The translations under genes and the position numbers were made by a program. From Scyliorhinus canicula (Eukaryota), in NCBI RefSeq assembly GCF_902713615.1, contig NC_052161.1:118894636-118958635 (forward strand): a stretch of DNA of 64,000 nt, written 5' to 3'. The notes below the pieces were generated by a model. That model was not told the origin of the DNA, did not search any database, and worked only from the letters and a program-made list of their open reading frames with translations. Shown in pieces: positions 13,766 to 64,000 of the stretch; positions within the stretch are counted from its first letter, which is position 1; each line of letters opens with the position of its first letter.

Positions 13766-16700
13766 GTAAGAAGCTGTTATGGGCAATGAAAAGCATTCAG
13801 CTGGAAAGGCTGAAATAACAAACCATAGGAACCAGTGGAATCGGATTATGCACAGAAGAATTTGCAGCCTGCTGTTTGATCACAAGGATAACACAGCAAC
13901 TAACACCATTTCTCCTTCAAATCCTCTCATTTCTTTAAGATCCTCCTGAATGGCAAGTGTCACGAAGCACACTAATGTTTGTGAGGCTGTCCCAAAGAGG
14001 AACACCGGTTTGTGGGGGGTTTATTGTTTTATTTAGTTTTGCTGTGAGGGGTCAAGTGAAACCCCAGGGAGACTAAATAGCCCAGTCGCCGGGTAACAAT
14101 TATTAATGACTATTTATTAAAGAAAAGACAAATACACATAAAGAGGACTACTCTACTTTATGAATTTCTAAACACCCACAATTTCTATAGAACGTGCCCC
14201 TTGTTACAAAACAATACCTGAACTCTGTGAGACTTCCCCTGTTCCCCCAAACAACACCCAAATTAAATAACCAGCTATAATTACCACGCAATACAGGGAT
14301 GATACTCAAATCTGGGAGCCTGGTCCAGCAAAGATATTTAAAAACTGATGTTACAAAGGTTTTCTGCACTGCCTTGGCTCTAAGACTTAGAAGCTTGTTT
14401 GCTGTAAACTTGGCCTTCAGGTTTAGTGGCTGGAAACTGGCTTGTCCACTTTCTGAGACCACTAGATGGTAACTGCCTCTCCTGACTTTTAGGTCTGGGC
14501 AATTATACCTTTGTTGTTCTTTGATTATGCCTTCTGTGTATTCGGCTGTCTATCCCTATCAATGCTCTTGACTATACACTAATATATGTATAAATCAGGG
14601 ACCTACCCAATCGTCTATAATATGTTTTTCCTCCATACGCTATTCATACTTGATTATTATCTAAACTGCTGTTCTAAACTCATTACAGGGAGAAATATAC
14701 CAATAGAGGCCCCTTTTGAATGCTGTCTAATTTGTCTCCGGGCAAGTTCACGCCACAAGCATAGCCCCAAGCCACTGCTCGGAACAACTAACTGCCTTCA
14801 TCAGTCTTCTTCGCTGATAGCAGATGTGAGGCGTTTGAGAATTTCCTCATCTCTAAAATTTAGACTGTCTATTTGACTGCCTCATCTTCTCACCTCAAGT
14901 GGTTCCATCACATAAGCAAAAAATATTCAGTTAAACCATTTAAGAAACAATGGGCGGGGTTACTGTGATGTGATATTCCAATATGTTGAGCTTTGAGTCC
15001 CATTCAAGGGCAATCTAACGGGATGAGTGCCAACTCTTAGCTATAATCAATCTGACATTAACATGTTTGGGCAGTGTCAACCCATTTAGTATTGGATGTG
15101 GGCCCAGAGGAGAAAACCACTTACTCTTGCACTAGTTTGAACCTAAGGGTTCTACTTCTGTGTGGTATCTGACAGATTCTACTTCTGTGGTCCCAGAACC
15201 TGGCAGAGGTGTGTGATGCAAAATTGTACACCGTGCACATCTTATTCCTGAACAGGTAATTATTAGGAAAAGGTGCAAGAGGATTGTCAATGTGGGAGGT
15301 GGAAAGTCTCACGCCTGGGCAGTAGAGGGTGCTATATCAGCTACTCTGGTTTGTTATGGGGCCAAGTGTCAGGTTACCTCTTCTGGCTGTGCCCAGGAAT
15401 GTCCTGCACCAGCACATTCCACTGTTGGTATCACAAGCTTGACTTACAAGTCATGACATTGGGCGAGTGATATGAGCCAATTTCAGAAATCAAATCACCT
15501 GAACAGACATCATGCTAAAGTTTGTTGACCTGCTCCTCCTCCTGGTCCCCATACCCTAAGAGGCCATTGGCAACCATGGTCTTCCATGGGGTTGGCCCAT
15601 GATTATGGACCATTGGATTGGCCCATGATTATGCTCGGCAAAGTGCTGCAGCAGTTTGCCTTTTGCAGTGTATTTGAACAGGAAACTCTCCCGCTCTTAT
15701 CGCCTTCCATCAGGCATGTTGGACGGATTGATAATCAACCTGTTTGGCCACGTTATGAACACACCTTCCCTGGCCATTAAGTCCTGGAGTGCGACTTAAA
15801 CCCAGTGCTTCTGGCCCAGAGATAGGGACGCTACCCACTCCACTTCAGGAGTTGACCAGTTAAACTTTTGTAATTCCTGGTTGCACAGAAAGACAATGAC
15901 CAACAGAATCAGGGTTAGAATGGAGACTGGGAATTGTGAAGGTACAGACTGATAGAGACGATTGAATTCTAGCTAAAGGGAGATAGTCCATGGCATTTTA
16001 GTAATTCTTACACTGTTATCCCATTATTTGCAGGGATGAATATGGTTGGACCCCACTGCATCATGCCGCATTTAATGGTTGCCTCATGCTCGTTAAACTC
16101 CTTGTTCACCGCGGGGCACCAATCGATGCCGCAGACCAACATGGCTGGACTGCTCTTCACCGGGCCACGTGGAATGGGCACACTCAGGTTGCTGAGTTCT
16201 TGCTGCATCGCGGAGCTTTGACTACTGCGTGCACCAGGTGTGGGATGACGCCGTTGCACTGTGCAGCTGCATGTGGGCACACGCTGACTACGCAGCAGAT
16301 CCTCAGCTATGGTGCGAGCACAGATGTGTCCGATGCAAGATGCTGGACTCCATTGCATTGGGCAGTCGTGAGTGGCCAACCACATATAATAGAATTCTTA
16401 CTATCAAAAGGAGCATCAGTGAACTGTACGACATGTGGCAACATGACACCCTTGCACTTGGCAGTGGAAGTTGGAAACAGAGAGGTGATTCAATTGCTTT
16501 TGGAAAATGGAGCCTGGATCAATGCAGAAGATGATATGGGAAGGACTGCATTATCAATAGCTGCTGCTAATGGCCATCAAGAGGTATGTCGAGATGAAGG
16601 GTTCCCAAACTGGGTTCCTCCTTTTCTGCCCCACACCAGATTGATTGAGACAACATGGGTATTGTGCTATTTCCAGCTCATCAGATCAGTTGCTGGCTTC

Positions 16701-19700
16701 TCCAGAATACAGGATTAGCGCAGAGTGTGGGGGAGAGGAGAGTGTGGGATCTGTGTGAGAGAGAGGGACCTGCAGGGGGTGGATGGGGGGGGGGGGGGGG
16801 GGGGGAGAGCAGAGCCTGTGAGAGGGACATGCAAGTGGGGGAAGGAAGCAGGGCCCACGACGGGCAGGGGAGAGCGGGGCCTGTGAAAGGGAGTGGGGCA
16901 TGTGAGAGGGGGGAAAGCGGGGCCTGCGAGATATGGGGGTGAGTGAGGCCTGTGAGGGGGGAGAGCAAGGTCTGCGCGCGGGAGGCAGTGCAGGGCCTTC
17001 AGGGGGGGGGGGGGGGGCAGTGGGGCCTGTGATGGGGCGGGGGTGAGTGAGGCCTGTGAGGGGGGAGAGCAAGGTCTGCGTGTGGGAGGCAGTGCAGGGC
17101 CTTCGGGGGGGGGGGGGGCAGTGGGGCCTGTGATGGGGGGGGGGGGGGGGGGAGTGAGGCCTGTGAGAGGAAGGGGAGTGGAGAGCGTGGCCTGCATGGG
17201 GAAGAGGGTGCAGGGCCAGTGGAAGTTGAGAAGTGCGGGGCCTATGAGAGGTGTGGAGAGTGGGATCTGCAATTGGGGAGAGAGCAGGGGCCCGCAAAAG
17301 GGGGCAGGGGAGAGCTGGGCCTGCAGGGTAGTGAGAGTGAACCCTGTGAAAGTTGGGGAGAGTGGGGCCTGTGAGAGGAAGGGAAAGCTGGGCCTGTGAA
17401 AGCCTGGCGGGAAGAGTGGGGAAGGGCAGAGCAGTTGGGTCCCAGGCCAGGGGCAGAGAGGTCATGCCTTGGAGAGAGAGGTGAGTATGTGTGAGAGATG
17501 AGAATGAGTGATGTAAATGTGTGAGTGAGTGAATGAGAGATGAGAGGGAGTGTGTGAGATTTTTTTAAAATATAAATTTAGAGTCCAATTATTTTTTCCC
17601 AATTACGGAGCAAGTTAGTGTGGCCAATTCACCTACCCTGTTTCTGGAGATGAGACACAAAGGGAAAATATGCAAACTCCACACAGAGTGACCTGGGGCT
17701 GGGATCGAACCCGGGTCCTCGGCGCTGTGAGCCAGCAGTGCTAACCACTCCGCCGCCATGCTGCCCTGCAGTGAGAGGAAGGGGAGTGGAGAGCGTGGTC
17801 TGCATGGGGAAGAGGGTGCAGGGCCAGTGTAAGTTGGGAAGTGCGGGGCCTGTGAAAGGTGTGGAGAGTGGGGTCTGCAGTTGGGGAGAGAGCAGGGCCC
17901 GCAAAAGGGGCAGTGAGTGAGAGATGAGAGTGAGTGTTTGTGTGTGTGAGAGATGTGTGTGTGTGTGAGAGATATGTGTGAGATATATGTGAGTGTGACA
18001 GATGTGTGTGTGTGAGAGATATGTGTGAGATATATGTGAGTGTGACAGATGTGTGTGTGTGTGAATGTGAGAGATGTGTGTGGGAGATGTGTGTGGGAGA
18101 TGTGTGTGTGTGAATGTGAGAGATGTGTGTGTGTGTGGGAGATGTGTGTGTGTGAATGTGAGAGATGTGTGTGTGTGTGGGAGAAGTGTGTGGGAGATGT
18201 GTGTGTGTGAATGTGAGAGATGTGTGTGTGTGGGAGATGTGTGTGTGGGAGAAGTGTGTGTGTGTGAATGTGAGAGTTGTGTGTGTGTGGGAGAAGTGTG
18301 TGGGAGATGTGTGTGTGTGGGAGAAGTGTGTGGGAGATGTGTGTGTGTGGGAGAAGTGTGTGTGTGTGAATGTGAGAGATGTGTGTGTGTGTGTGGGAGA
18401 AGTGTGTGGGAGATAGACTTATTACATAGAACATAGAACAGTACAGCACAGAACAGGCCCTTCGGCCCTCGATGTTGTGCCGAACAATGATCACCCCACT
18501 TAAACCCACGTAACCCGTATACCTGTAACCCAACAATCCCCCCATTAACCTTACACTACGGGCAATTTTGCATGGCCAATCCACCTAACCCGCACATCTT
18601 TGGACTGTGGGAGGAAACCGGAGCACCCGGAGGAAACCCACGCACACACGGGGAGGACGTGCAGACTCCACACAGACAGTGACCCAGCCGGGAATCGAAC
18701 CTGGGACCCTGGAGCTGTGAAGCATTGATGCTAACCACCATGCTACCGTGAGGCCCCTATGTGAGATGTGTGTGTGAATGTGAGAGATGTGTGTGTGTGT
18801 GGGAGAAGTGTGTGGGAGATGTGTGTGTGTGGGAGAAGTGTGTGTGTGAATGTGAGAGATGTGTGTGTGTGTGGGAGAAGTGAGTGTGGGAGATGTGTGT
18901 GTGTGAGATGCGTGTGTGTGCACATTTGTGTGTGTGTGCCCAACATGAGAATCTAACATTCCAGCAGCATTCTTCCCATTTAAAGGAGCAGCAACAGACC
19001 TTCCATTAAACATGATAAAATGGTGAGACCCAAGTGAATTATTTAACAAGAGAGCTTGTTAATTATAGTAAACGTAGAGAGAGAGAGAAAAAAGGCTTTG
19101 ATAAATTAGGTTTTTGTATGTTTGTACGTGTTGCACAAAAACAATCGTTTTTTTTTGTGGTTTGGCTCTTCAACAATAATAATGTTTCTCAGGGATTCCT
19201 CAGTATTCTTGGGAGGTCAGAAACATTCCGCAAAGTTTGAGAAACACTGGTCGAGACAATGAATTCCTGTGCTAACATTGCAAACTCTATATGAAGGCTG
19301 TGTTCATGAGACATTGAAAGGGATGGACCACACATACGCTTATCTAGTTTCAGTATGTCCCAGCACTTCAAACCAACGTTCTTTAAAATACTAGAGCCTA
19401 GCTCATCTCGAATTTCTTCTGCAGTTCTCTGCCCTAAAGCAGGTCTGACCCACAATGCCACAACCTCCACAATGGGGGACGGCAAGGAGGCAGCTCCCAA
19501 ATTTACCCCAACCAAAATAGGGATCAAACCCGATGCCATTGATCTCCTCCAGCAATCTGGCATCCCCAAGGGTTGCTGTGGCAATGTGGACTTTTACATG
19601 CATGTTGTGGTCATGGAGCCATGAAGTAGTGATGGTAGCGGCTCTGAGTTTCTTCGCGACAAAGGGGTGACTAGTGTAGTGGATTGAGGTGCCTGTCTCT

Positions 19701-26615: not shown

Positions 26616-29600
26616 GATAGATAGATAGATAGATAGATAGATAGAGAAATACAGCATAGAACAGGCCCTTCGGCCCACGGTGTTGTGCCGAACTTTTGTC
26701 CTAGGTTAATCATAGATCATAGAATTTTGGACACTACGGGCAATTTAGCATGGCCAATCCACCCAACCTGCACATATTTGGACTGTGGGAGGAAACCGGA
26801 GAACCCGGAGGAAACCCACGCACACACGGGGAGGATGTGCAGACTCCACACAGACAGTGACCCAAGCTGAAATCGAACCTGGGACCCTGGAGCTGTGAAG
26901 CAATTGTGCTAACCACAATGCTACCATGCTGCCTTTAAGAACAAATTAATCTACACTCCATTATTCTACCCTAATCCATGTACCTATCCAATAGCCGCTT
27001 GAAGGTTCCTGATGTTTCCGACTCAACTACTTCCACAGGCAGTGCATTCCATGCCCCCACTACTCTCCGGGTAAAGAACCTACCTCTGACATCCCCCCTA
27101 TATCTTCCACCATTTACCTTAAATTTATGTCCCCTTGTAATGGTTTGTTCTACCCAGAGAAAAAGTCTCTGACTGTCTACTCTATCTATTCCCCTGATCA
27201 TCTTATAAACCTCTATCAAGTCGCCCCTCATCCTTCTCTGTTCTAATGAGAAAAGGCCCAGCACCCTCAACCTTTCCTCGTAAGTCCTACTCTCCATTCC
27301 AGGCAACATCCTGGTAAATCTCCTTTGCACCTTTTCCAAAGCTTCCACATCCTTCCTAAAATGAGGTGACCAGAACTGCACACAGTACTCCAAATGTGGC
27401 CTGACCAAGGTTTTGTACAGCTGCATCATCACCTCACGGCTCTTAAAATCAATCCCTTTGCTAATGAACGCTAGCACACCATAGGCCGTCTTCACAGCTC
27501 TATCCACTTGAGTGCCAACTTTCAAATGAACATAGACCCCAAGATCTCTCTGCTCCTCTACATTGCCAAGAACCCTACCGTTAACCCTGTATTCCGCATT
27601 CATATTTGTCCTTCCAAAATGGACAACCTCATACTTGTCAGGGTTAAACTCCATCTGCCACTTCTCAGCCCAGCTCTGCATCCTATCTATGTCTCTTTGC
27701 AGCCGACAACAGCCCTCCTCACTATCAACAACTCCACCAATCTTCGTATCATCTGCAAATTTACTGACCCACCCTTCAACTCCCTCATCCAGGTCGTTAA
27801 TGAAAATCACAAACAGCAGAGGACCCAGAACTGATCCCTGCGGTATGCCACTGGTAACTGGCCTCCAGGCTGAATATTTGCCATCCACCACCACTCTCTG
27901 ACTTCTATCGGTTAGCCAGTTCGTTATCCAACTGGCCAAATTTCCCACTATCCCATGCCTCCTTACTTTCTGCATAAGCCTACCATGGGGAACCTTATCA
28001 AATGCCTTACTAAAATCCATGTACACTACATCCACTGCTTTACCTTCATCCACATGCTTGGTCACCTCCTCAAATAAGTCAATAAGACTTGTAAGGCAAG
28101 ACCTACCCCTCACAAATCCATGCTGACTATCCCTAATCAAGCAGTGTCTTTCCAGATGCTTAGAAATCCTATCCCTCTGTACACTTTCCATTACTTTGCC
28201 TACCACCAAAGTAAGACTAACTGGCCTGTAATTCCCAGGGTTATCCCTATTCCCTTCTTTGAACAGGGGCACGACATTTGCCACTTTCCAATCCCCTGGT
28301 ACCACCCCTGTTAACAGCGAGGATGAAAAGATCATTGCCAACGGCTCTGCAATTTCATTTCTTGCTTCCCATAGAATCCTTGGATATATCCCGTCAGGCC
28401 CGGGGGACTTGTCTATCCTCAAGTTTTTCAAAACGCCCAACACATCTTCCTTCCTAGCAAGTATCTCCTCGAGCTTACCAGTCTGTTTCACACTGTCCTC
28501 TCCAACAATATGGCCCCTCTCGTTTGTAAATACTGAAGAAAAGTACTTGTTCAAGACCTCTCCTATCTCTTCAGACTCAATACACAATCTACCGCTACTG
28601 TCCTTGATCGGACCTACCCTCGCTCTAGACATTCTCATATTTCTCACATATGTGTAAACGGCCTTGGGGTTTTCCTTGATCCTACCCGCCAAAGATTTTT
28701 CTTAGCTCTCCTAATCCCTTTCTTCAGTTCCCTCCTGGCTATCTTGTATCCCTTCAGCGCCCTGTCTGAACCTTGTTTCCTCAGCCTTACATAAGTCTCC
28801 TTGTTCCTCTTAACAAGGCATTCAACCTCTCTTGTCAACCATGGTTCTCTCACTCGACCATCTCTTCCCTGCCTGACAGGGACATACATATCAAAGACAC
28901 GCAGAAACTGTTCCTTGAACAAGTTCCACATTTCACTTGTGTCCTTTCCTGACAGCCTATGTTCCCAATTTATGCACTTCAATTCTTGTCTGACAGCATT
29001 GTATTTACCCTTCCCCCAATTGTAAACCTTGCCCTGTTGCACGCACCTATCCCTTTCCATTACTGAAGTGAAAGTCACAGAATTGTGGTCACTACCTCCA
29101 AAATGCTCCCCCACTAACAAATCTATCACCTGCCCTGGTTCATTACCAAGTACCAAATCCAATATGGCCTCCCCTCTGGTCGGACAATCGACATACTGTG
29201 TTAGAAAAGTTTCCTGGACACACTGCACAACACCACCCCATCCAAACTATTTGATCTAAAGAGTTTCCACTCAATGTTTGGGAAGTTGAAGTCACCCATG
29301 GCTACTACCCTGTGACTTCTGCACCTTTGCAAAATCTGTTTCCCAATCTGTTCCTCCACATCTCTGCTGCTATTGGGGGGCCTATAGAAAACTCCCAACA
29401 AGGTGACTGTTCCTTTCCTATTTCTGACTTCAACCCATACTACCTCAGTAGGCAGATCCTCCTCGAACTGCCTTTCTGCATCTGTTATACTATCTGTAAT
29501 TAACAATGCCACCCCCCCCCCCCCCCCCACCTCTTTTACCATCCTCCCTAATCTTGTTGAAACATCTATAACCAGGGACCTCCAACAACCATTTCTGCCC

Positions 29601-31091: not shown

Positions 31092-34000
31092 ATTTAATGA
31101 ACAAAATTGAAGAATGGCTGCTCTCCGCATCAAGCCAGAGTGTCTACAAATCAACCCCCACACGGCAAATGCAGCAGCAACTTTTAAACATTGGCTGGCA
31201 TGTTTCAACGGGTACATCAGGACGGCCCCGACTACCCCCACGGAGGAACAGAAAATGCAAGTCCTCCACTCAAGGGTGAGCCCAGAAATCTACACCCTTA
31301 TCGAAGACACAGACGGTTTTGAGGACGCAATGATTTTGTTAAAAGAGCACTACGTCCGCACTGTGAGTCAGGTATACGCTCGGCATCTTAAAGCTACCAG
31401 ACGGCAGATCCCAGGGGAATCACTGGACGATTTGTACCGTGCATTGTTAGTGTTAGGTAGAAACTGTAACTGTCCACAAGTCTCAGCCAATGACCACACC
31501 GAACTCTTAATACGGGATGCTTTTGTTGCGTGCATGCTGTCCTCTAAAATCCATCAGCGACTGCTGGAAAATAACACGCTAGGGCTTAAAGAGGCACGGA
31601 AACCTGCGCACTCCCTAGATGTAGCCTCCTGCAACGCCCAGGCCTATGTTCCTGACCCCGCGGCACCCGCATGGACAGGGTGGACCCCACCCGCGGCCGA
31701 TTCCAAAGCACCCGTAAATTGCCCACAAGCTTGTGCCGTGCTGCAGCCAGGAAACCCCGGGGGGGGGGGGGGGGGGGGGGCGATGCTATTTTTGCGGGCA
31801 AAACAAACACTCCCGGAAACACTGCCCGGCCCGATCTGCAATCTGCAAGGGCTGCGGCAGTATGCCAGGCCCGGTCGGCAGCCGCTGTCTCCACAGGCGA
31901 ACCGGGCCCGCTGCCATTTCTCTCCTCACAGGCCATGTGCGATTCATGGGGGCAGCCATCTTGGATGACGTCTCAGGACCCCGACTAGACTGGCCATGTA
32001 TCGCCTGATGAGATCTCCCAGCCGGCCATGTGCGATTCATGGGGGTAGCCATCTTGGATGACGACTCAGGACCCCGACTCGGGTGGCCTTGTATCACCCG
32101 ACGAGATCTCTCAGCTTCTGCCACAACTTGCCTCAGTGACACTGGACCAGTCTCGGCCCCGATCACTTTCAACTGCTACGACGTCGGTACTCATCAATGG
32201 GCACGAGATATCCTGCTTGATCGACTCTGGGAGCACAGAGAGCTTCATCCATCCCAATACGGTAAGACACTGCTCTCTCACTGTACACCCGATTAAACAA
32301 AAGATCTCCCTGGCCTCCGGGTCCCACTCTGTGGAGATTCCGGGGTACTGCATAGCCAACCTCACGGTCCAGGGCGTGGAGTTCAATAACTTCCGACTCT
32401 ACGTTCTCCCCCATCTCTGCGCTGCCACACTCCTGGGACTGGACTTCCAGTGTAACCTGCAAAGTTTAACGTTCAAATTCGGCGGCCCCATACCCCCCTC
32501 ACTGTCTGCGGCCTCGCGACCCTCAAGGTCAACCCGCCTTCCCTGTTTGCAAACCTTACCCCCGATTGCGAACCCATCGCCACCCGGAGCAGACGGTACA
32601 GTGCCCAGGACCGGACCTTCAATAGGTCGGAAGTCCAACGGTTACTAAAGGAAGGCATTATCGAGGCCAGCAACAGCCCCTGGAGAGCACAAGTGGTGGT
32701 TGTAAAGACCGGGGCGAAACATAGGATGGTCATAGACTACAGTCAGACCATCAACGGATTTACGCAGCTTGACGTGTACCCGCTCCTCTGCATATCTGAA
32801 ATGGTCAACCAGATAGCGTAATACAAGGTTTTCTCCACAGTAGACCTTAAATCAGCCTACCACTAGCTCCCCATTCGCCCGGAAGACTGCAAGTACACTG
32901 CATTCGAAGCAGATGGGCGGCTCTACCACTTTCTAATGGTTCCCTTTGGTGTCACAAATGGGGTCTCGGTCTTCCAACGGGAGATGGACCGAATGGTTGA
33001 CCAGTGCGGTCTGTGGGCCATGTTCCCATACCTCAACAATGTCACCATCTACAGCCACGACCAACAGGACCATGACACCAACCTCCGCAAATTCCTCCAT
33101 ACCGCAAAAATCTTTAACTTAACCTATAACAAGGATAAATGCGTGTTCAGCACCAATCGCCTAGCCATCCTCGGCTACGTAGTACATGATGGAGTCATAG
33201 GCCCAGATCCCGAACGCATGCGCCCCCTCATGGAGTTCCCCTCCCCCACTGCCCCAAGGCCCTGAAACGTTGCCTGGGCTTCTTTTCTTATTACGCCCAG
33301 TGGGTCCCCAATTATGCGGACAAGGCCCACCCACTAATCCAGTCCACAGTTTTTCCCCTATCGGCAGAGGCCCGCCAGGCTTTCAGTCGCATCAAAGCCG
33401 ACATCGCCAGGGCGACGCCGGGACTGCAATCGATGAGTCCCTCCCCTGCCAGGTCGAGAGCGAAGCATCAGACTTAGCTCTAGCTGCCACCCTCAGTCAG
33501 GCGGGCAAACCCGTAGCCTTCTTTTCATGTACACTCCATGCCTCAGATTTCTGCCATTCCTCCATCGAGACGGAGGCCCAAGCCATCATCAAAGCTGTGC
33601 GGCATTGGAGGCATTACCTGGCCGGCAGGAGATTCACTCTCCTCACTGACCAATGGTCGGTAGCCTTCATGTTTGACAACACACAGCGGGGCAAAATTAA
33701 GAATGATAACATCTTACGGTGGAGGATCGAGCTCTCCATCTATAATTACGAGATCTTGTATCGTCCTGGGAAGCTCAACGAGCCTTCTGATGCTCTGTCC
33801 CGCGGCATTTGTGCCAGTGTAGAAGTAGACCGACTCCGGACCCTCCACAACAACCTCTGCCACCTGGGGGTCACCCGGTTCTTCCACTTTGTTAAAACCC
33901 GCAATCTGCCCTACTCCATCGAGGAAGTCAGGGCTGTAAGCAGAAACTGCCAAATCTGCTCGGAGTGCAAGCCGCACTTCTACAGGTCAGAGAAAGCGCA

Positions 34001-35065
34001 CCTGGTGAAAGCTTCCCGCCCCTTTAAACGCCTCAGAGTGGATTTCAAAGGGCCCCTTCCCTCCACTAACCGCAACACGTATTTCTTATAAGTGATTGAT
34101 GAGTACTCCCGGTTCCCTTTCACCATCCCTTGTCCCGACATGACGGCTGCCACTGTCATTAAAGCCCTCCACAGCATCTTTACCCAGTTCGGTTTCCCCA
34201 CCTACATCCATAACGATAGGGGGTCCTCCTTCATGAATGACGAGTTCCGTCAATTCCTGCTCAGCAAGGGCATTGCCTCCAGCAGGACGACCAGTTACAA
34301 CCCCCGGGGAAACAGGCAGGTAGAGAGGGAGAACGGGACGGTCTGGAAGGCTGTCCTACTGGCCCTATGGTCCAAGAATCTCCCAGTGTCTCGATGGCAG
34401 GAGGTCCTCCCCAATGCACTTCACTCCATCCAATCACTACTGTGCACTACTACCAATAAAACACCTCATGAACGTCTCCTTGCCTTCCCTAGGAAGTCCT
34501 CCTCGGGGACCTCGCCCCCAACATGGCTGGCAGCCCCCATACCTGTCCTACTCCACAAACACGTATGGGCCCACAAGTCGGACCCACTGGTCAAGAGGGT
34601 ACATCTCCTCCATGCTACCCCCAGTATGCCTATGTGGCGCACCCCGACGGCCGACAAGACACGGTCTCCCTCCGGGATCTGGCCCCCGCTGGATCCCCAC
34701 CCTCACCCCCACCCCCCCACCAACCCCAACCATTTTTTCACCGGCGCACACCACCGCAGCCCCCTTCCCAGGAGGATCCGTCCTCTCTCTGGCTCCATCT
34801 GGATGCAATAAAGCTGAAGATGACACGCTCCCAGAGCCACGGATACCCGAGCCGACGCCAGCATCACCACCGGGACTGCGACGATCGCAGAGAACGATCA
34901 GGGCCCCCGACCGGCTGATAGTTTCATTGTAAAATGAACTTGTAAATAATTGTCTGTAAATATGTGTATTGCATGTAAAGGCACCGAAGGGTACGGCTAT
35001 AACCTGTACCACTGTAAATGTAGGACCACCACCCCCGCTGGACTCTTTTTTAAACAGGGGGTGAA

Positions 35066-51107: not shown

Positions 51108-51861
51108 TAACTCAGACTCACTCCAACTATTACTCGCAATAAATTCACTCGCAACAATTACTCACTCGCAACAATTACTCGCAACAATTACTCACTCGCA
51201 ACAATTACTCACTCGCAGCAATTACACACTCGCAGCAATTACACACTACAACTATTACTCGCAATAATTACTCAGTTGCAACAATTACTCACTCCAAATA
51301 TTACTCGCAATAATTACTCGCAACAATTACTCATTCCAACTATTACTCGCAATAATTACTCACTTGCAACAATTACTCACTCCAACTATTACTCGCAATA
51401 ATTACTCACTCGCAACAATTACTCGCAATAATTACTCTCGCAACAATTACTCTCTGCAACAATTACTCTAAATAATTACTCACAATAGTTACTCGCAATA
51501 ATTACTCTCAACAATTACCCGCAATAATTACTCGCAACAATTACTCACAATAATTACTCACTCGCAACAATTACTCACTCCAACTATTACTCGCAATAAT
51601 TACTCACTCGCAACAATTACTCACTCCAACTATTACTCGCAATAATTACTCGCAACAATTACTCACTCCAACTATTACTCACAATAATTACTCGCAATAA
51701 TTACTCACTCTCAACAATTACTCACTCGCAACAATTACTCACTCTGCAACAATTACTCGCAATAATTACTCACAATAGTTACTCACAACAATTACTCGCA
51801 ACAATTACTCACTCGCATCAAGTACTTGCAATAGTTACTCACTCACAATAATTACTCGCAA
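51108..51861. repeat. AT-rich minisatellite of 13/17-bp units (caataattactcg / caacaattactcactcg)
   Basis: Roughly 50 short units, almost devoid of G except in CpG. Confidence 0.95.
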
Positions 51862-54427: not shown

Positions 54428-57400
54428 ATAGAACAGTACAGCACAGTACAGGCCCTTCGACCCAAAATGTTGTGCCGACCATTTATCCTAATCTAAGATC
54501 AACCTAACCTACACCCCTTCAATTTACTGCTGTCCATGTGCCTGTCTAAGAGTTGCTTCAATGTCCCTAATGACTCTGACTCCACCACCTCTGCTGGCAG
54601 TGCATTCCACACACCCATCCCTCTCTGTGTAAAGAACCGACCTCTGACATCTCCCCTTTACCTTCCTCTAATCACCTTAAAATTATGTCCCCTCATGACA
54701 GCCATTTCAGCCCTGGGGAAACGTCTCTGGCTATCCACTCTATCCATGCCTCTTATCACCTTGTACACCTCTATCAAGTCACCTCTCTGCCTTTTTCACT
54801 CCAGTGAGAAAAGCCCTAACTCCCTCAACCTTTCTTCATAAGACATGCCCTCCAGTCCAGGCAGCATCCTGGTAAATCTCCTCTGCACCTTCTCCAAAGT
54901 ATCCACATCCTTCCTATAATGAGGCGACCAGACTGGACACAATATTCCAAGTGTGGTCTAATCAGGGTTTTATAAAGCTGCAGCAAAACCTCGCGGCTCT
55001 TAAACTCAATCCCCCTGTTAATGAAAGCCAACACACCATACGCCTTCTTAACAACCCTATCATCCTGGGTGGCAACTTTGAGGGATCTATGCACGTGGAC
55101 CCCAATATCCCTCTGTTCCTCCACCACTTCCAAGAATCCTGCCTTTAACCCTGTATTCAGCATTCAAATTCGACCTTCCAAAATGAATCACTTCACATTT
55201 ATCAAGGTTGAACTCCATCTGCCGCTTCTCAGCCCAGCGCTGCATCCTGTCAATGGCCTGTTTGTGACGCAGTGGGTCGCCCCCTGCCTCTGAGCCAAAA
55301 GCTCCGGGTTTGAGTCCTATTCCAGGACTTGATGGCCAAGGAAGGTGCATTGATAACATGGTCAACAGGTTGAGTTTCAACCTGCAAAATCCTTCCAACA
55401 CATGCCGATAGCTGGCGATAAGAATGGAAGAGATTCCCCATCAGCCATGCTTGATGCGGATGGCACCCCTCAGGTTATAAGCCTTTGGTGACAGACTAGT
55501 GACCTGTTCCAGGAAAAACCTCGCTTTGGGAACAGATGGAAGTCTGCTTTATGCACCACTTGGTCTGGGAAGAGAAACATCTACAACTGGCCAGGAGTAT
55601 AAAAACTGATTAGAAGAGCTATTATAAAAAGGAGAATAGCTGAAGTAGATGCTAGTCCCTCAGGACAGAGAACTGTAACCTGCAACAGCCCTCAACACTA
55701 TCTACAACTCCACCAACCTTTGTGTCATCGGCAAACTTACTAACCCACACTTCCACTTCCTCATCCAAGTCATTTATAAAAACCACAGAGAGCAGAGGTC
55801 CTAGAACAGATCCCTGCGGGACACCACTGGTCACCGACCTCCAGGCGGAATACTTTCCATCCACTACCACTCGCTGTCTTCTTTCGGCCAGCTAATTCTG
55901 TATCCAGACAGCCAAATTTCCTTGTATCCCATGCTCCCTAACTTTCTGAATGAGGCTACCATGGGGAACCTTATCAAATGCCTTACTGAAATCCATATAC
56001 ACCACATCCACTGCCCGACCTTCATCAATGTGTCTCGTCACATCCTCAAGAATTCAATGAGGCTTGTGAGGCATGACCTGCCCCTCACAAAGCCATGCTG
56101 GCTATCTTTAATCAAACGATGTCTCTCTAAATAATCATAAATCCTATCTCTCAGAATCCTTTCCAATATTTTGCTCGCCAGAGACGTGAGACTGATGGGT
56201 CTGTAATTCCCAGGGATTTTCCTATTCCTTTTCATTAACAGGGGAACAACATTCGCCTCCCTCCAATCACCCGGTACTACTGCAGTGGAGAGTGAGGACG
56301 CAAAGATCATCGCCAACGGCGCAGCAATCTCCTCTCTCGCTTCCCGTAGTAACCTTGGGTATATCCCGTCATGCCCTGGGCACTTATCTATCCTAATGCT
56401 TTTCAAAATTTCCAGCACACCCTCCTTCTTAATATCAACCTGTTTGAGTCTATTAACCTGGTTCACTGTTCGCATGAGCAACAAGGTCCCTCTCTCTAGT
56501 GAATACTGAAGCAAAATATTCATTTAGGACCTCCCCTATGTCCTCAGACTCTAAACACAAGTTCCCTCCAATATTCCTGATCGGCCCTACTCTCACACTG
56601 ATCATCTTATTTCTCACATAAGTGTAGAACGTCTTGGGGTTTTCCCGAATCCTTCCCGCCAGGGCTTTTTCATGCCCCCTTCTACCTCTCCTAAGTCCAT
56701 TTTTAGGTTCCTTCCTGGCTACCTTGTAACCCTCTAGAGCCGTGCCAGATCCTTGCTTCCTCAACGTTACGTAAGCTTCCTTCCTCCTTTTGACTAGAAG
56801 CTCCACTTCTCTTGTCATCCAAGGCTCCTTCACCTTACCATTCCTTCCTCGTCTCAGTGGGACTAAACTATCCGATACTCACAGCAAGGGCTCCTTAAAC
56901 AACCCCCACATTGCTGTTGTGCATTTCCCTGAGAACATCTGTTCCCAATTTATGCTCCCCAGCTCCTGTCTAATGGCAGTATAATTTGCCCTCCCCCAAT
57001 TAAATACATTCCCATGCTGTGTGTTCCTATCCCTCTCCATGACTATGGTAAAGGACAAGAAGTCGTGGTCACTGTCACCAAAATGCTGTCCCAACGAGAC
57101 ATCTGACACCTGGCCTGGTTCATTGCCAAGCACCAAATCCAATATGGCCTCCCCCCCCCCCCCCCCCCCCCCCCCCAGTCAGCCTATCTACATATTGAGT
57201 CAGGAATCCTTTCTGGACACACCTGACAAAGTCTGCTCCATCTAAACCAGGCATTGTCAAACTCGGGGGCGCGACCTGTGGGTGGGTGTCGGGAGGGTCG
57301 CGGAACCGTCCGTCACAGCGCTCCCGATCGCGCAAATCCGCACGCAACAGCCACAGCAGCCGGCTTTTAATAATGCTTCAAAATGGCCAGGAACAGATTT

Positions 57401-58125
57401 TAAAAATTCGACCGCACTGCGCATGCGTGCCTGATCATGTCAAGATCGGGCATGCAGGCGCAGTGCGCTGTATTTTTAAAAATGGTCGCAGCCTTTTTTT
57501 TTCAAGTTCGGGGACAAAAGGACCATTGGGGCCAAATGGGCCCAAAACCATTTCCTCCATTTTTGTCAGCAACAAACAAGGTAAGAGAAAATGGTGGGTC
57601 GCGCAGTTTGGCCGGCGTGGGTCACGAAGGTCGGCCGGCGTGGGTCACAAAGGTCGGCCGGTGTGGGTCATGAAGGTTGGCTGGCATGGGTCGCGAAGGT
57701 CGGCCAGCATGGGCCGCAAAGGTCAGCTGCCGTAGGTCACGAAGGTCGGCCGGAGTGGGTCGCGAATGTCGGCCAGCATGGGCCGCAAAGGTCAGCTGCC
57801 GTGGGTTTTGAAGGTCGTCCGGCATGGGTCGTGAAGGTCGTCCGGCATGGGTCGCGAAGGTCGGCCAGGTTGGGTCCCGAAGGTTGGCTGGTTGGTAAAA
57901 ATGGGTCCCCGGAAAAAAAGGTTGAAAAACACTAAACCATTTGCACTAAAGAGGTTCCAGTCAATATTAGGGAAGTTGAAGTTACCCATGACAACAACTC
58001 TGTTACTTCCGCATCTTTCCAAGATCTGCCGCCCAATCTGTTCCTCCATCTCTCTGCTGCTATTGGGGGGTCTATAGAAAACTCCCAATAAAGTGACTGC
58101 TTTCTTGTTTCTGACTTCCACTCCA
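54428..58125 (-). mobile_element. Fragmented CR1 LINE ORF2 with nested insertions (55254-55676 and 57248-57933)
   Basis: APE GNFNFPNIDW and SDH; [12 protein letters not shown] and FADDTK; C-terminal RPHLEYCVQ; TTCTATG tail. Confidence 0.92.
57248..57933. mobile_element. hAT-Charlie-type MITE with internal ~22-bp tandem repeat, inserted in CR1
   Basis: CAGGCATTGTCAAACT...GGTTGAAAAACACT, inserted at ATCTAAAC; the CR1 sequence resumes after it; related to 59223-59958. Confidence 0.75.
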
Positions 58126-58429
58126 TTACCTAATGGAGAAGTGCCACCTAGAGGCACAGACATGAATTGCGGGAAACACATGCCGGGTTTGCTGAGGAGA
58201 CAGTGGCCAAGTGGTAATGTCACTGGACTAGCAATCCAGGTTAATGTCCTGGGGACTTAGGTTCAAATCCCACCATGACAACTGCTGAAATTTAAATTTG
58301 ATCAATAAAACTGGAAATTAAGATATTCTCAGTAATGGTGACCAAATATCATTGATTGTTGTAAAGACCCATCAGGTTCATTAATGTCTTTTAGCTGCCC
58401 AATTAAGTACCGAGATTCAGTGCTCGACC

Positions 58430-59064: not shown

Positions 59065-60240
59065 TCAGTTTACCAAACTAATAGCTGAAATGGGTGGATT
59101 GTCTAATGAGGAAAGGCTGGAGAGGTTAGGCCGGTATCCACTGGAGTTTAGAACTTGATTGAAACGTGTAATATCCTGTAGGGTCCTGACGGGGCTGTTT
59201 CCTCTTGTGGGAGAATCGAGATCAATCATTTTCAAAGTCAGGGTCACGAGCCACGGGTGGGTCACAGGCGGTTTTCAAGAGGGTCGGGGAGCCATCCGTC
59301 TCGGCGATCCCGATTGCAGGAATTAATGCGCAACGGCCTCAGCAGCCGGCTTTTAAAAATGCCGGCCACGACCGGCTTTCAGAATGCAGGCGTGCTGCGC
59401 ATGCGTGCCCACTCATCAGTGCGCATGCCCAGAGTCCAGCGAGAAACACCACCTCCTCCTGACCCAGGAGAAGATTTTTAAAAATTCAATGCAGTTTTCC
59501 TGCCTGAAGCGACATTAGAGAACAGGTTACGCGGCCCGAACACTGACGTCCCGTGCTCTGGGCGCGATTGCGATTCCTCCATTTTGTCAGCAACAAACAA
59601 GCAACGGGCCTGTAAAAAATTTTAATAGATCGTTTCGTAATAAGGAAGAGAGGGCCGGAGACACAAACAGGCCCGGATCTCACAACTAAACCTGCTGGAA
59701 AGAGTGGCTCAGGAGGGTCCACAACAGGGCAAAGCAGTGGTGGTGTGAGCTCCAGGGCCTCTGATGAACAACCCATACAGAAATGTAACATTGAATCACA
59801 AGAGCAAGTGAGATCATGAGGACCAAGTAGGCTTATCTGTCGCACTAAACGTAACCGAAAATGGTGGGTCACAAAGTTCGGCCAGTTGATAAACATTCGT
59901 CCAGAATGTTGGCCGGTTGATAAAAATGGGTCCTCAGAAAAAAGTTTGAAAAACACTGATCTAGAACAGGGGGGCACTATTTAAAAATAAGAGGTCGCTC
60001 ATTTAACACTGAGATGCGGAAAAGATTTCTCTCAGAGAATTGTGAGATTTTGGAATTCTCTTCATCAAAATAAAAGAGGCAGAGCTTAGAATATCTTTAA
60101 GACAGAAGTAGACAGATTCTTGGGAAGCAAGGGGGTGAAAGGTTATTGGGGTAGAAAGAAATGTGGAGTTGAGGTTAAAATTTGATCAGCCATGAGGGGC
60201 CGAGTGGCCTATTCCTCCTAATTCATATGTTTGTATGTCT
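59065..60240 (+). mobile_element. Old CR1 3' fragment split by a Charlie-type element
   Basis: Degenerate CR1 C-terminal coding sequence and 3' UTR on both sides of 59223-59958. Confidence 0.7.
59223..59958. mobile_element. hAT-Charlie-type MITE
   Basis: Right end AGTTTGAAAAACACTG followed by ATCTAGAA; left flank ATCGAGAT. Confidence 0.75.
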
Positions 60241-60470
60241 CTCCTTCAATGTATATGAGGTGGACTGTAAAGGTAAAGTTGCCACAGTCCCAGATGACTG
60301 CTTTCCCCTTTGAGGGGGAGAGCTGACTGGTGGTGATTTTAACCTGAGGATCACCACAGCTCAGGCGAGGGGCAAGGTTGAGAAGGTGGGGCCTTCATAA
60401 ATAATCTCAGCTGGTACAGGAATTGAACCTGCGCTGCTGGCCCTGCTCTGCATCACAAACCAACTGTCCA

Positions 60471-61917
60471 GCCAGGGGAAAGAGTGAGCTGCTGGTGTGA
60501 CGCTGGGAGGTGCCACCAGGGGGAGTGAGTGAGCTGCTGGTGTGAAGCTGGAAGGTACCGCCAGGGGGAGTGAGTGAGCTGCTGGTGTGAAGCTGGGAGG
60601 TGCCACTAGGGGGAGTGAGTGAGCTGCTGGTGTGAAGCTGGAAGGTACCGCCAGGGGGAGTGAGTGAGCTGCTGGTGTGAAGTTGGGAGGTGCCACCAGG
60701 GGGAGTGAGTGAGCTGCTGGTGTGAAGCTGGGAGGCGCCGCCAGGGGGAGTGAGTGAGCTGCTGGTGTGAAGCTGGAAGGTACCGCCAGGGGGAGTGAGT
60801 GAGCTGCTGGTGTGAAGCTGGAAGGTACCGCCAGGGGGAGTGAGTGAGCTGCTGGTGTGAAGCTGGGAGGTGTCACCAGGGGGAGTGAGTGAGCTGCTGG
60901 TGTGAAACTGGGAGGTGCCACCAGGGGGAGTGAGTGAGCTGCTGGTGTGAAGCTGGGAGGTGCCACCAGGGGGAGTGAGTGAGCTGCTGGTGTGAAGCTG
61001 GGAGGTGCCACCAGGGGGAGTGAGTGAGCTGCTGGTGTGAAGCTGGGAGGTACCACCAGGGGGAGTGAGTGAGCTGCTGGTGTGAAGCTAGGACGTGCCA
61101 CCAGGGGGAGTGAGTGAGCTGCTGGTGTGAAGCTGGAAGGCGACGCGTGGGGGAGTGAGTGAGCTGCTGGTGTGAAGTCGGGAGGCGCCGCCAGGGGGAG
61201 GCAGTGAGCTGCTGGTGTGAAGTCGGGAGGCGCCGCCAGGGGGAGGCAGTGAGCTGCTGGTGTGAAGTCGGGAGGCGCCGCCAGGGGGAGGCAGTGAGCA
61301 GGGCCGGTTTTAAGCCTATTTGACCAATTTCATCAAATTGGGCCCCGCATCTTAAGGGGGCCCCACGCCAGCGGCGACAGAGTTACCGTTTGAAGCCTTT
61401 TCTGTATTCTAAGAGGAACTATAGGGTAGTTTTTACTTTTGGGGAACGCACCGCATTACTGTCGACAAATCCTTCAGCCCTGCGCCGCCAAATCCTTCCG
61501 CCCGGGTAAGTAAGTTTCAAAATTTTAGTATATCAAGCATTTAATGTTTTTTTTCGGTTAAAGACGAGCATACTACACGAAATATAAACATACATAAATT
61601 TTTACTTTTGTAGAGTAGGGGCCCCGCCATCACTTTTCTAATTGGGCCTGCAATTCCTAGCACCGGCCCTGGCAGTGAGTGAGCTGCTGGTATGAAGCTG
61701 GAAGGCGCCGCCAGGGGGAGGCAGTGAGTGAGCTGCTGATGTGAAGCCGGGAAGCGTCGCCAGGGGGAGGCAGTGAGTGAGCTGCTGGTGTGAAGCCGGG
61801 AGGTGCCGCCAGGGGGAGGCAGTGAGTGAGCTGTTGGTGTGAAGCCGGGAAGCGCCGCCAGGGGGAGTCAGTGAGTGAGCTGCTGGTGTGAAGCGGGAGG
61901 TGCCGCCAGGGGGAGCC
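60471..61917 (+). repeat. Minisatellite of 23 units (18 x 45 bp + 5 x ~49 bp) with a CTCF-like core, split by a hAT MITE
   Basis: Unit tgtgaagctgggaggtgccaccagggggagtgagtgagctgctgg; exact 45-bp periodicity from 60496 to 61261. Confidence 0.95.
61299..61671. mobile_element. Non-autonomous hAT (Tip100/Ac-type) MITE, 373 bp
   Basis: Perfect 10-bp TIR CAGGGCCGGT...ACCGGCCCTG; perfect 8-bp TSD GCAGTGAG (61291-61298 and 61672-61679). Confidence 0.92.
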
Positions 61918-62400
61918 GCTGAGCCGGGAGCCCGGACGGGTTTTTCTGCTGCACCAGTTGGGCCGCGGCCGCCATATTAGCGCCGCCGTCGCTCTGCTGT
62001 CGCCTGGGGACTGGCTCTATTTACCCGGGGAAAGAGGGGCGGCGACATCCCGCTGGAGGAACCGCGGTGCAGCTGCTCGGCCAGGGTCCGGGGTCCCGTT
62101 CGGAAGGCGCTGGATCGGCTTTCAGGTCGAGGTAAAGGCCGGGGATCCGGCTCCGCGGCGGGAGGGATCCGGCCTCCGCTCCAGAGGCCGCCCGGAGCCG
62201 GGGAGTGACCGTGGGGCCGGGGCGGGGATGGGGAGTGACTGCCGAGAGCGGGCCGGGGCTGAGCGATCAGCGACCCTGGCCCTCGCAGCGGATTGGAAAC
62301 ATAAGAAATGTCCGCCTCTCCCATCGGGAATCATCTCCCTCCGGGTTCCCAAAGGGTGAGGCCGGACAGCCCGGCCCATCTGCGGTGATGCCCGGAGCAG
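61900..62400 (+). promoter_or_regulatory. CpG island / promoter with probable non-coding first exon of an unidentified downstream gene
   Basis: Unique, very CpG-rich sequence; YY1-type motif CCGCCATATT near 61969-61978; candidate donors GAG|gtaaag (~62131) and AGG|gtgagg (~62355). Confidence 0.65.
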
Positions 62401-62756
62401 GGATTGGGAAAGCTGGCTGGAGTTGCATTTATATAGCGCCTTTGGACCACCGGACTTTGCAGCCAGTGAATTACTGTCGCAGCGTCGACACTGTTGTCAT
62501 GTGGCAGCCAGTTTGTGCACAGCAAGCTCCCACTACAGCAATGTGATCTGTTTTTGTGGTGTTAGATGAGGGATAAATATTGGCCAGGGCTGGGGAGAGA
62601 ATCCCTGTTCTGGTTGGAAATAGTGCCCTGGGATCATTGGTACCACCTTAAGAGTCTTCGTACAACAGCTCGGTGGAATGGCAGCACCTCTGACAGTGCC
62701 GCATTCCCCATTCTGCACCGAGTGTCAGCCTAGACTTTTGTGGTTGAGCCTCACTA

Positions 62757-63085
62757 GGGTGGCACGGTGGTACAGTGGTTAGCATTAATGCCTCCCGGGG
62801 ACCTGGGTTCATTCCGACCTCGGGTGACTGTGTGGAGTTTGCACTTTCTCCCCGTGTCGGCCTGGGTTTTTTCTGGGTGCTCTGGTTTCCTCCACAGTCC
62901 AAAGATGTGCAGGTTAGGTGGATTGGCCATGCTAAATTGCTACCTAGTGTCAAAGGAAGGGGTAGGTGAGGTTAAGGAGTTATTGGGATAGGGCAGCAAA
63001 GTGGGCTTGGGTGGAGTGCTCTTTCAGAGGGTCGGTGCAGATCCGATGAGCCGAACAGCATCCTGCACTATAGGGATTCTGTGAA
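62757..63085 (+). mobile_element. V-SINE with CR1 tail
   Basis: tRNA head, V domain, tail gcactatagggattctgtg. Confidence 0.82.
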
Positions 63086-63149
63086 ATGGGACTTGAACCC
63101 ACAGCCTTTTGACTCAAGGGGAATGTACTACTAACTGATCCGCTGATGA

Positions 63150-63720
63150 TAGTTTACCTGGACCTTCTGAAAGTCTTTGGTAAAGTGCCACATTAAAGAT
63201 TGCTACAGCAGCTTGAGACACCAGAATGCAAGGTTATCCTGGATGTAGGTATCGGCTGAGAGGGAAAGCATTCGTCAAAGGAATGGTATTGGATACTGAA
63301 GGAATGAGCATCTTGGGGTTTGGTGTTGGTCTTCTGCTGTTTCTAGTGGCTATATCGTGGATGTGGAAGCAGAGTATTTTGGGCCAATTTATAAATGGTA
63401 AATCTGAATGTTGGTGGGAAGGGCTGATGCGCTCTGCAGTAAATATTAGGGGAGAGAGCTGAGGCTTTTAAGGGAAAACTTGTTAAAGGTTGGTGCAATC
63501 GGAATTGTGATTAGAACAAGCAGCATTAAAAGAGGGAAAGTGCACAATTTCAAGAGGACTCTAGTCCATCTCAAACATTGTACTGCTCTGGAAACAGAAA
63601 TTTGGAATAGGGTAATTACGTTCATAAAATAGTACCTGAGAGATGAGAAAATACAAGGTGCTTTGTTTATTCAAAAGAAGGTGTAGGGGCTGATCTTGGG
63701 ATGTTTAAGATCGACAAGGA
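63150..63720 (+). mobile_element. Very old CR1 RT fragment
   Basis: Degenerate VYLDxxKxFxKVPH motif near 63150-63200. Confidence 0.5.
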
Positions 63721-64000
63721 CATTTGTCAATATCGGTGCATGAAGTAACTTCACGTTCATTGGCGATATCATGATTACAGTATTGGCTTCAGCTGAATGA
63801 TTACCAGATTAAGCAACCTGGCCTGCTGTCCCTAGCATTATCTTGTAAATAATCAGTTGAGAAACTTCCTGCTCGTGTTGATCATCTCCAGTTATGCAGT
63901 TTTTTGAAGTTTGGGTGCTCATTCCACTCTTACTTACAGAGGCAATTGTGCTGTGGTAGTGTAAAGAAAATGGCTTCCCCCCCCCCCCCCCCCCCCCCCC

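Follow-up and report, generated by a model that had tools for sequence, protein, structure and literature searches.

Tandem repeats with CTCF sites are an already known kind of sequence. One CTCF site per unit is found in the macrosatellites DXZ4 and ICCE, in those of the FIRRE type and in the tRNA variable number tandem repeat (VNTR) at 1q23.3 (PMC3491370, PMC6125249, PMC4041453), and for Dxz4 an effect of orientation has been described (10.1101/165340). The promoter VNTR of SLC6A4, 5-HTTLPR, is composed of GC-rich units of 22-23 bp about 1 kb upstream of the start site and is bound by CTCF (PMC2848977). At the promoter '2xCTSes', clustered CTCF sites are occupied jointly by CTCF and CTCFL/BORIS, and CTCFL can turn them into start sites (PMC10832218). 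The CTCF orientation code also operates in cartilaginous fish: in the little skate, orientation-biased CTCF motifs (MA0139.1, score cut-off 8) mark the boundaries of topologically associating domains (TADs) (PMC10115646), and sharks have an 11-finger CTCF as well as CTCFL, the latter with testis-biased expression (PMC7471279). Here we describe an array of 45- and 49-bp units with CTCF-like cores at positions 60471-61917 of a 64,000-nucleotide stretch of Scyliorhinus canicula DNA (contig NC_052161.1; this whole stretch is called the window). If bound, it would be a further case of the known kind. A preliminary description had seen in it a promoter-proximal CTCF site amplified into a super-anchor tunable by copy number. 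The reading towards which we lean, with a confidence only a little above even, is that of a neutral minisatellite of a promoter shore, which holds its CTCF cores by accident and is not a selected tunable anchor.

The shark array shares with 5-HTTLPR that it is a GC-rich minisatellite just upstream of a promoter, a likely one in the shark, with consensus-like CTCF sites, the copy number being variable in the human case. The units of 5-HTTLPR are, however, half as long, and binding was demonstrated there by chromatin immunoprecipitation (ChIP) and electrophoretic mobility shift assay (EMSA), as against putative binding in the shark; 5-HTTLPR is likewise not known to have an insulator or loop role. 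With the DXZ4-type arrays it has in common the tandem, co-oriented CTCF motifs. In those arrays copy number is variable and orientation matters for long-range contacts, but their units are 3-7 kb long with strong sites, as opposed to 45-49 bp here, and they serve as superloop anchors on the inactive X and do not lie at a promoter edge. The 2xCTSes resemble it in having several CTCF motifs under what would be a single peak and in being promoter-associated; they differ in that they consist of two or a few motifs and not of a homogeneous minisatellite, and in that their occupancy is known, whereas the shark sites are predicted. A fourth point of comparison is provided by the classical hypervariable GC-rich minisatellites with their Jeffreys-type core, which is Chi-like (GCTGGTGG). 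The array resembles them in unit length, G-rich strand bias, interspersed variants and runs of identical neighbours, and the GGAGGTG and GCTGGTGT of its unit are similar to Jeffreys/Chi-like cores.

Tandem Repeats Finder (TRF) reported two arrays: one with a period of 45 bp and 18.3 copies, spanning 60475-61299 (93% matches, score 1314), and one with a period of 49 bp and 5.0 copies, spanning 61671-61915 (90% matches, score 406). When the invariant GAGCTG was used as anchor, the region was resolved into 23 head-to-tail units of 45 or 49 bp, the number given in the preliminary description. Exactly 20 copies of the strict core CC[AG]C[CT]AGGGGG were counted, each of them on the + strand and within 60513-61916, and neither strand has it anywhere else in the window, whose sequence contains no N; the earlier manual count was thus exact. 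A 25-nt probe derived from the unit had 22 matches in the window, all in the array, against none in shuffled sequences. It had also been observed correctly that most units lack the GGC end of the consensus: 15 units end in GGGGGAGTGAG and none in GGC. As a repeat the array stands as first described, but its span of 1447 bp is not unbroken, 381 bp (61299-61679) being made up of a transposon insertion with its duplicated target.

At least six unit types can be distinguished, and the variant units are interspersed. The three main types are GTGCCACC...AGTGA, GTACCGCC...AGTGA and GCGCCGCC...AGGCA. Identical units stand side by side in blocks (GTACCGCC, four units; 61161-61251, three units; GTGCCACC, several units), which indicates recent duplication at the level of the unit. 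The G-rich strand is the + strand, with a GC skew of about +0.5 across the array. In unit length, number of copies, strand asymmetry and the presence of variant units the array has the properties of a minisatellite or VNTR. Divergence between units is greatest among the 49-bp ones adjoining the island, and the last of these, which has a 1-bp deletion, fades into unique sequence. Both kinds of 45-bp units are derivatives of the 49-bp form by deletion of 4 bp, one ending in GGGGGAG-TGAGT and the other in GGGGGAG-GCAGT. The least variable parts of the unit are a 17-bp spacer segment, GAGCTGCTGGTGTGAAG, and the stretch AGGGGGAG, which contains the G-run. A structure driven by G-quadruplexes or hairpins was considered and rejected: no G-quadruplex with loops of up to 7 nt was found within the array, and single-stranded folds of unit dimers had z values from -1.2 to +1.2. 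A search of 59500-64000 against the Rfam families at permissive thresholds gave no match.

The units were scored with a reconstruction of the JASPAR MA0139.1 count matrix, whose consensus equals the one quoted in the preliminary description. A + strand match at p<1e-4 was obtained for 22 of the 23 units (p from 2.2e-6 to 6.5e-5; 9.2-15.7 of 26.5 bits), approximately 13 of them at p <=1e-5, whereas the best - strand score in any unit was 5.3 bits. Scores below p<1e-4, named beforehand as evidence against CTCF sites, were therefore not what the scan returned. The one failing unit is that at 61116 (-2.6 bits). The + orientation of the CTCF-like cores is secure. Reading the core on the reverse strand was rejected: the IUPAC consensus CCASYAGRKGGCRSY fits the - strand of five distal units with two mismatches, but the matrix gives them only the 5.3 bits just mentioned. 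The last core (61903-61916) indeed runs into unique sequence and is the closest to the consensus, with a narrow lead over units of 15.58 and 15.30 bits; at matrix positions 6 and 15 its 19-mer carries G and A, respectively.

Compared with sites drawn from the matrix (mean 17.45 bits, standard deviation 4.4), the array units lie between the 5th and the 31st percentile, that is within the range but low. All units have A at matrix position 15 (11% of matrix sites), where 81% have C, at a cost of 2.9 bits, and the conserved 3' GGC triplet is found in no unit. Half of the units have G at position 6, and in the common 45-bp units positions 17-18 cost another 4.3 bits. The CpG-to-CpA change of the distal units gains about 3.5 bits at position 6. 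Two units are changed at position 4 and one has no core altogether. Relative to CCASYAGRKGGCRSY the units have 2-3 mismatches. Outside the array the window contains 33 matches at p<1e-4, among them five unrelated single sites of at least 15.3 bits. A strong CTCF-like site on the - strand at 58139-58157 (15.3 bits, one mismatch to CCASYAGRKGGCRSY) is situated in a 65-bp gap between two repeated segments.

Because the 20 cores are all copies of one sequence, their number and shared strand carry no weight of their own, and the relevant question is how often one unit would match by chance. In 5000 dinucleotide shuffles the observed best score was reached in 0.48% of trials with the 45-bp and in 0.20% with the 49-bp consensus unit. 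There are about six arrays of minisatellite type in the window, and 1329 windows of this genome were read. Taking 0.2-0.5% per array, about six arrays per window and 1329 windows together, tens of chance matches are expected. Chance alone is thus plausibly sufficient to produce arrays like this one over the part of the genome scanned, and motifs of many other factors might have been noticed as well.

Relative to a consensus with restored CpGs, 46 of the 75 variant occurrences are CpG transitions. Of the distinct variants outside CpGs, 8 fall in the 19 bp of the core and 11 in the 30 bp of the spacer; the two rates are about equal if the boundary unit is left out; this similarity gives no sign that the core is protected. 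The pattern expected of a DXZ4-type array, in which the motif is kept and the rest drifts, was not found in this test of low power.

The CpG content of the units changes abruptly within the array. The 14 distal units contain 0-2 CpGs each (mean 0.5 per unit, observed/expected ratio (o/e) 0.17), whereas the nine proximal units contain 2-3 (o/e 0.54-0.71). This step places the edge of the CpG island inside the array, near 61116. The adjoining unique sequence, 61918-62420, has a GC content of 0.69, a CpG o/e of 0.86 and 51 CpGs, as compared with an o/e of 0.49 for the whole window; for 61116-62420 the values are 0.62 (GC) and 0.78 (o/e). These figures are above those that define a CpG island (GC >0.5, o/e >0.6, length >200 bp). 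An island is therefore present as had been claimed, but the array does not simply abut it, its edge lying within the array and not at the array's end.

The island is likely to be a promoter. It contains a YY1-like GCCGCCAT (61968), a GC box (GGGCGG; 62037) and GT dinucleotides resembling splice donors (62132 and 62356); there is no TATA box in the island and no ATG in 61917-62135. The array lies approximately 50 bp to 1.5 kb from the likely start region. The open reading frames (ORFs) of the island gave no Pfam match, the island has no second copy in the window, and SINEs (short interspersed nuclear elements) start directly downstream of it, at 62420. In the 2 kb between the array and the end of the window at 64000 no exon or gene was identifiable, which leaves the designation 'housekeeping' promoter without support.

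The insertion that splits the array has perfect 10-nt inverted repeats at its ends, CAG-initial (CAGGGCCGGT / ACCGGCCCTG), and is flanked by a perfect 8-bp direct repeat. If the element and one copy of this repeat are taken out, an intact 49-bp unit is restored. Elements of the hAT superfamily are recognised by an 8-bp target duplication and short CAG-initial inverted ends. Taking into account that no ORF of at least 50 amino acids lies wholly within it, we read the element as a miniature inverted-repeat transposable element (MITE) of hAT type. It carries a recurring subterminal motif, AATTGGGCC, and has no second copy in the window. A CpG o/e of 0.96 means that the element is young or else unmethylated. 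That its inverted ends and the target duplication are perfect shows the array to be older than a recent insertion. Accessible DNA is favoured by hAT elements, and the position of the MITE is consistent with an open island, without being proof of it.

The course of events that we infer, methylation and binding included, would be the following. A GC-rich, G-strand-biased minisatellite may have expanded from the 5' shore of the CpG island, by unequal exchange or replication slippage, the 49-bp units at the island being its oldest form. Two 45-bp derivatives would have arisen by the 4-bp deletions, and one of them would have spread distally. The distal two thirds would then have lost their CpGs, a loss that suggests germ-line methylation of this part, and the proximal third would have kept them inside the island. 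The hAT-type MITE would have been inserted later, in the CpG-rich proximal part. Each unit would hold, by chance, a forward CTCF-type core of lower-third strength, and those within the island (CCGCC form, with a CpG in the core) could be sites of some methylation-sensitive binding of CTCF or CTCFL, facing the island and any downstream gene. The array itself would be a neutral by-product of repeat dynamics. Some occupancy of the island-embedded units by CTCF or CTCFL is plausible, with roughly even chances. The earlier proposal of an amplified promoter-proximal site survives to the extent that outward growth from the promoter side is plausible, the diverged 49-bp units looking ancestral; as a super-anchor it is not supported. 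The scores are modest, single sites elsewhere in the window are equally good, the core is as variable as the spacer and there is no evidence for selection on copy number.

Several points weigh against a neutral origin. The matches in 22 of the 23 units are strongest in the island part, and in other vertebrates CTCF sites in unmethylated islands tend to be occupied. The scores come from a reconstructed matrix. For a single array and a single motif, a chance match of 0.2-0.5% is uncommon, and the constraint test is weak, since under concerted evolution core and spacer become equally uniform. The CTCF-like site at 58139-58157, 2.3 kb upstream and reverse-oriented, forms with the forward array a divergent pair as seen at skate boundaries (PMC10115646). 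Among the bound CTCF motifs of mammals, clusters at promoters form a recognised class (PMC10832218), and a human promoter VNTR whose sites are merely consensus-like does bind CTCF, as shown by ChIP and EMSA (PMC2848977).

Features of the array and its borders (positions in the window)
Feature	Position	Strand	Basis or remarks
tRNA-derived SINE, 5'-truncated; left border of the array	60269..60473	-	82% identity over 205 bp to copy at 3164-3359
Degenerate first partial unit, tail (CCAGCCAGGGGAAAGAGT)	60474..60485	+	Direct reading; TRF array start 60475
14 distal 45-bp units, CpG-depleted, cores mostly GTGCCACC or GTACCGCC	60486..61115	+	Unit table; matrix 9.2-13.7 bits
Four CpG-rich proximal units left of the insertion	61116..61298	+	3 CpG per unit, o/e 0.71
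Target-site duplication, left copy (GCAGTGAG)	61291..61298		Direct reading; identical to right copy
Non-coding element read as hAT-type MITE, 373 bp	61299..61671		Inverted-repeat ends, duplicated target
Target-site duplication, right copy (GCAGTGAG)	61672..61679		Direct reading
Five proximal 49-bp units within the CpG island	61680..61917	+	TRF period 49; matrix 11.5-15.7 bits
Best CTCF-like 19-mer of the array	61900..61918	+	15.72 bits, p 2.2e-6, 31st percentile of matrix-drawn sites
Unique part of CpG island, candidate TATA-less promoter	61918..62420	+	Composition, motifs

In the group of four proximal units, the unit at 61116 has a broken core and the other three score 15.3 bits; the unit at 61251 is the first of the 49-bp type and the one interrupted by the MITE. 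The SINE at the left border loses about 25 nt of its tRNA-like 5' head exactly where the first degenerate unit starts, whereas the copy at 3164-3359 extends through this point, and there is a B-box-like GGTTCAATTCC on the - strand. The SINE head was considered as the seed of the array and rejected, the sole shared string, TGAGCT, being out of register.

The upstream DNA is rich in transposable elements, as the preliminary description had it. An ORF for a reverse transcriptase of the LINE (long interspersed nuclear element) type lies at 26971-28692 (-), and the protease, RNase H and integrase domains of a long terminal repeat (LTR) retroelement at 32058-34811 (+). SINE copies are numerous, and for 28% of the window a second copy is present inside it. 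A 210-amino acid ankyrin-repeat ORF at 16086-16718 (+) (Pfam Ank, E 8.5e-41) is probably an exon of a host gene; it is directly followed by G-rich 27/104-bp arrays (16935-17145) and, at 17.9-18.9 kb, by long arrays rich in GT. Positions 51120-51857 are occupied by an AT-rich 13/17/46-bp tandem array of about 16-47 copies (69-76% matches). At 57594-57888 there is a CpG-rich 23/69-bp tandem array, the units of which contain two weak CTCF-matrix matches (8.8 bits); the flanks recur about 2 kb downstream, and the segments 57293-57933 and 59279-59957 have the appearance of two copies of an element that bears the repeat. At its end the window has a stretch of 23 C or more (63978-64000).

The array could alternatively be a working cluster of forward CTCF sites, acting as a broad loop anchor or barrier upstream of the promoter with a strength set by copy number. 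Under the convergent rule, forward sites stall cohesin that arrives from the right. Cohesin coming from the gene side would thus be halted, and the promoter would be tied to downstream partners and screened from the upstream repeats. The matrix matches in all but one unit, about 13 of them at or below 1e-5, the clear preference for the + strand, the location of the best units in the CpG island, the divergent pair completed by the reverse site and the 3.5 bits gained by the distal CpG-to-CpA change all speak for such a cluster, as do the orientation-biased MA0139.1 motifs (cut-off 8) at skate TAD boundaries (PMC10115646) and the precedents of bound tandem repeats (PMC2848977, PMC3491370, PMC6125249, PMC4041453). 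It has to be set against this that the C at matrix position 15 is missing from every unit and positions 17-18 are poor in most, that the scores fall in the lower third of what real sites would be expected to give, that conservation of the core does not exceed that of the spacer, and that one unit is without a core and two are altered at position 4. Moreover, the CpG decay of the distal two thirds suggests methylated and probably closed chromatin, and the count of 20 stems from tandem copying. We consider this interpretation rather doubtful. A variant of it appears more improbable by a good measure: the array may belong to a genome-wide class of shark minisatellites with co-oriented CTCF cores and serve here as a methylation-graded anchor. 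On this scheme methylation would keep CTCF or CTCFL from binding to the CpG-bearing CCGCC cores of the island but not to the distal CpG-free CCACC cores, and the strength of a boundary on the promoter side would depend on copy number and methylation together.

A role that does not involve CTCF has also to be weighed. The array might be a promoter-upstream VNTR that works through other factors as an enhancer or silencer dependent on copy number. The GGTGTGA in the invariant spacer would be the core of a T-box half-site, and the G-run GGGGGAG is presumably of the sequence type bound by MAZ, VEZF1 or SP/KLF. The low variation of GAGCTGCTGGTGTGAAG and AGGGGGAG, the lowest in the unit, would fit this idea, although homogenisation of the repeat accounts for it as well. 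The distance of the array from the start region is also favourable, and expression-modulating promoter VNTRs are well known (PMC2848977, PMC4973313). The motif identities, however, do not come from a matrix scan, and a given 7-mer is expected in about 0.5% of 45-bp units, which is no better than the CTCF match. We therefore rate a function of this kind as slightly less probable still than the methylation-graded anchor. Finally, the array could be no regulatory feature at all but a coding repeat or one internal to a transposable element. A frame on the - strand stays open for 246 codons across the array, and the ORF at 60361-61101 encodes a 15-residue proline-rich repeat, but this ORF starts with GTG, continues into the SINE and is broken in the 49-bp units, 49 not being a multiple of 3; its only match was to Extensin_1, at 40 bits against a cut-off of 105. 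A repeat-bearing element does occur nearby, namely that with the internal 23/69-bp array and flanks recurring 2 kb away. The unit of the present array, in contrast, is found nowhere else in the window, nor are the MITE and the island, and its flanks are a truncated SINE and a unique island, which do not match the ends of an element. A transposon-derived or coding origin was accordingly rejected and appears very improbable.

The array is probably best regarded as an ordinary minisatellite of a promoter shore, to which CTCF may plausibly bind. It illustrates that motif copies counted inside a tandem repeat inflate the apparent significance of a match. Whether arrays of this type form a class or are due to chance could be measured by comparing the fraction of minisatellite units that have matrix matches with the 0.2-0.5% obtained in shuffles. 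If CTCF does occupy the array, its internal CpG step would be a built-in contrast between methylation-sensitive and methylation-insensitive versions of one site. The locus would then be a compact natural boundary whose strength shifts by unequal crossing-over, and an example from a lineage in which CTCF-based folding is known but has hardly been dissected.

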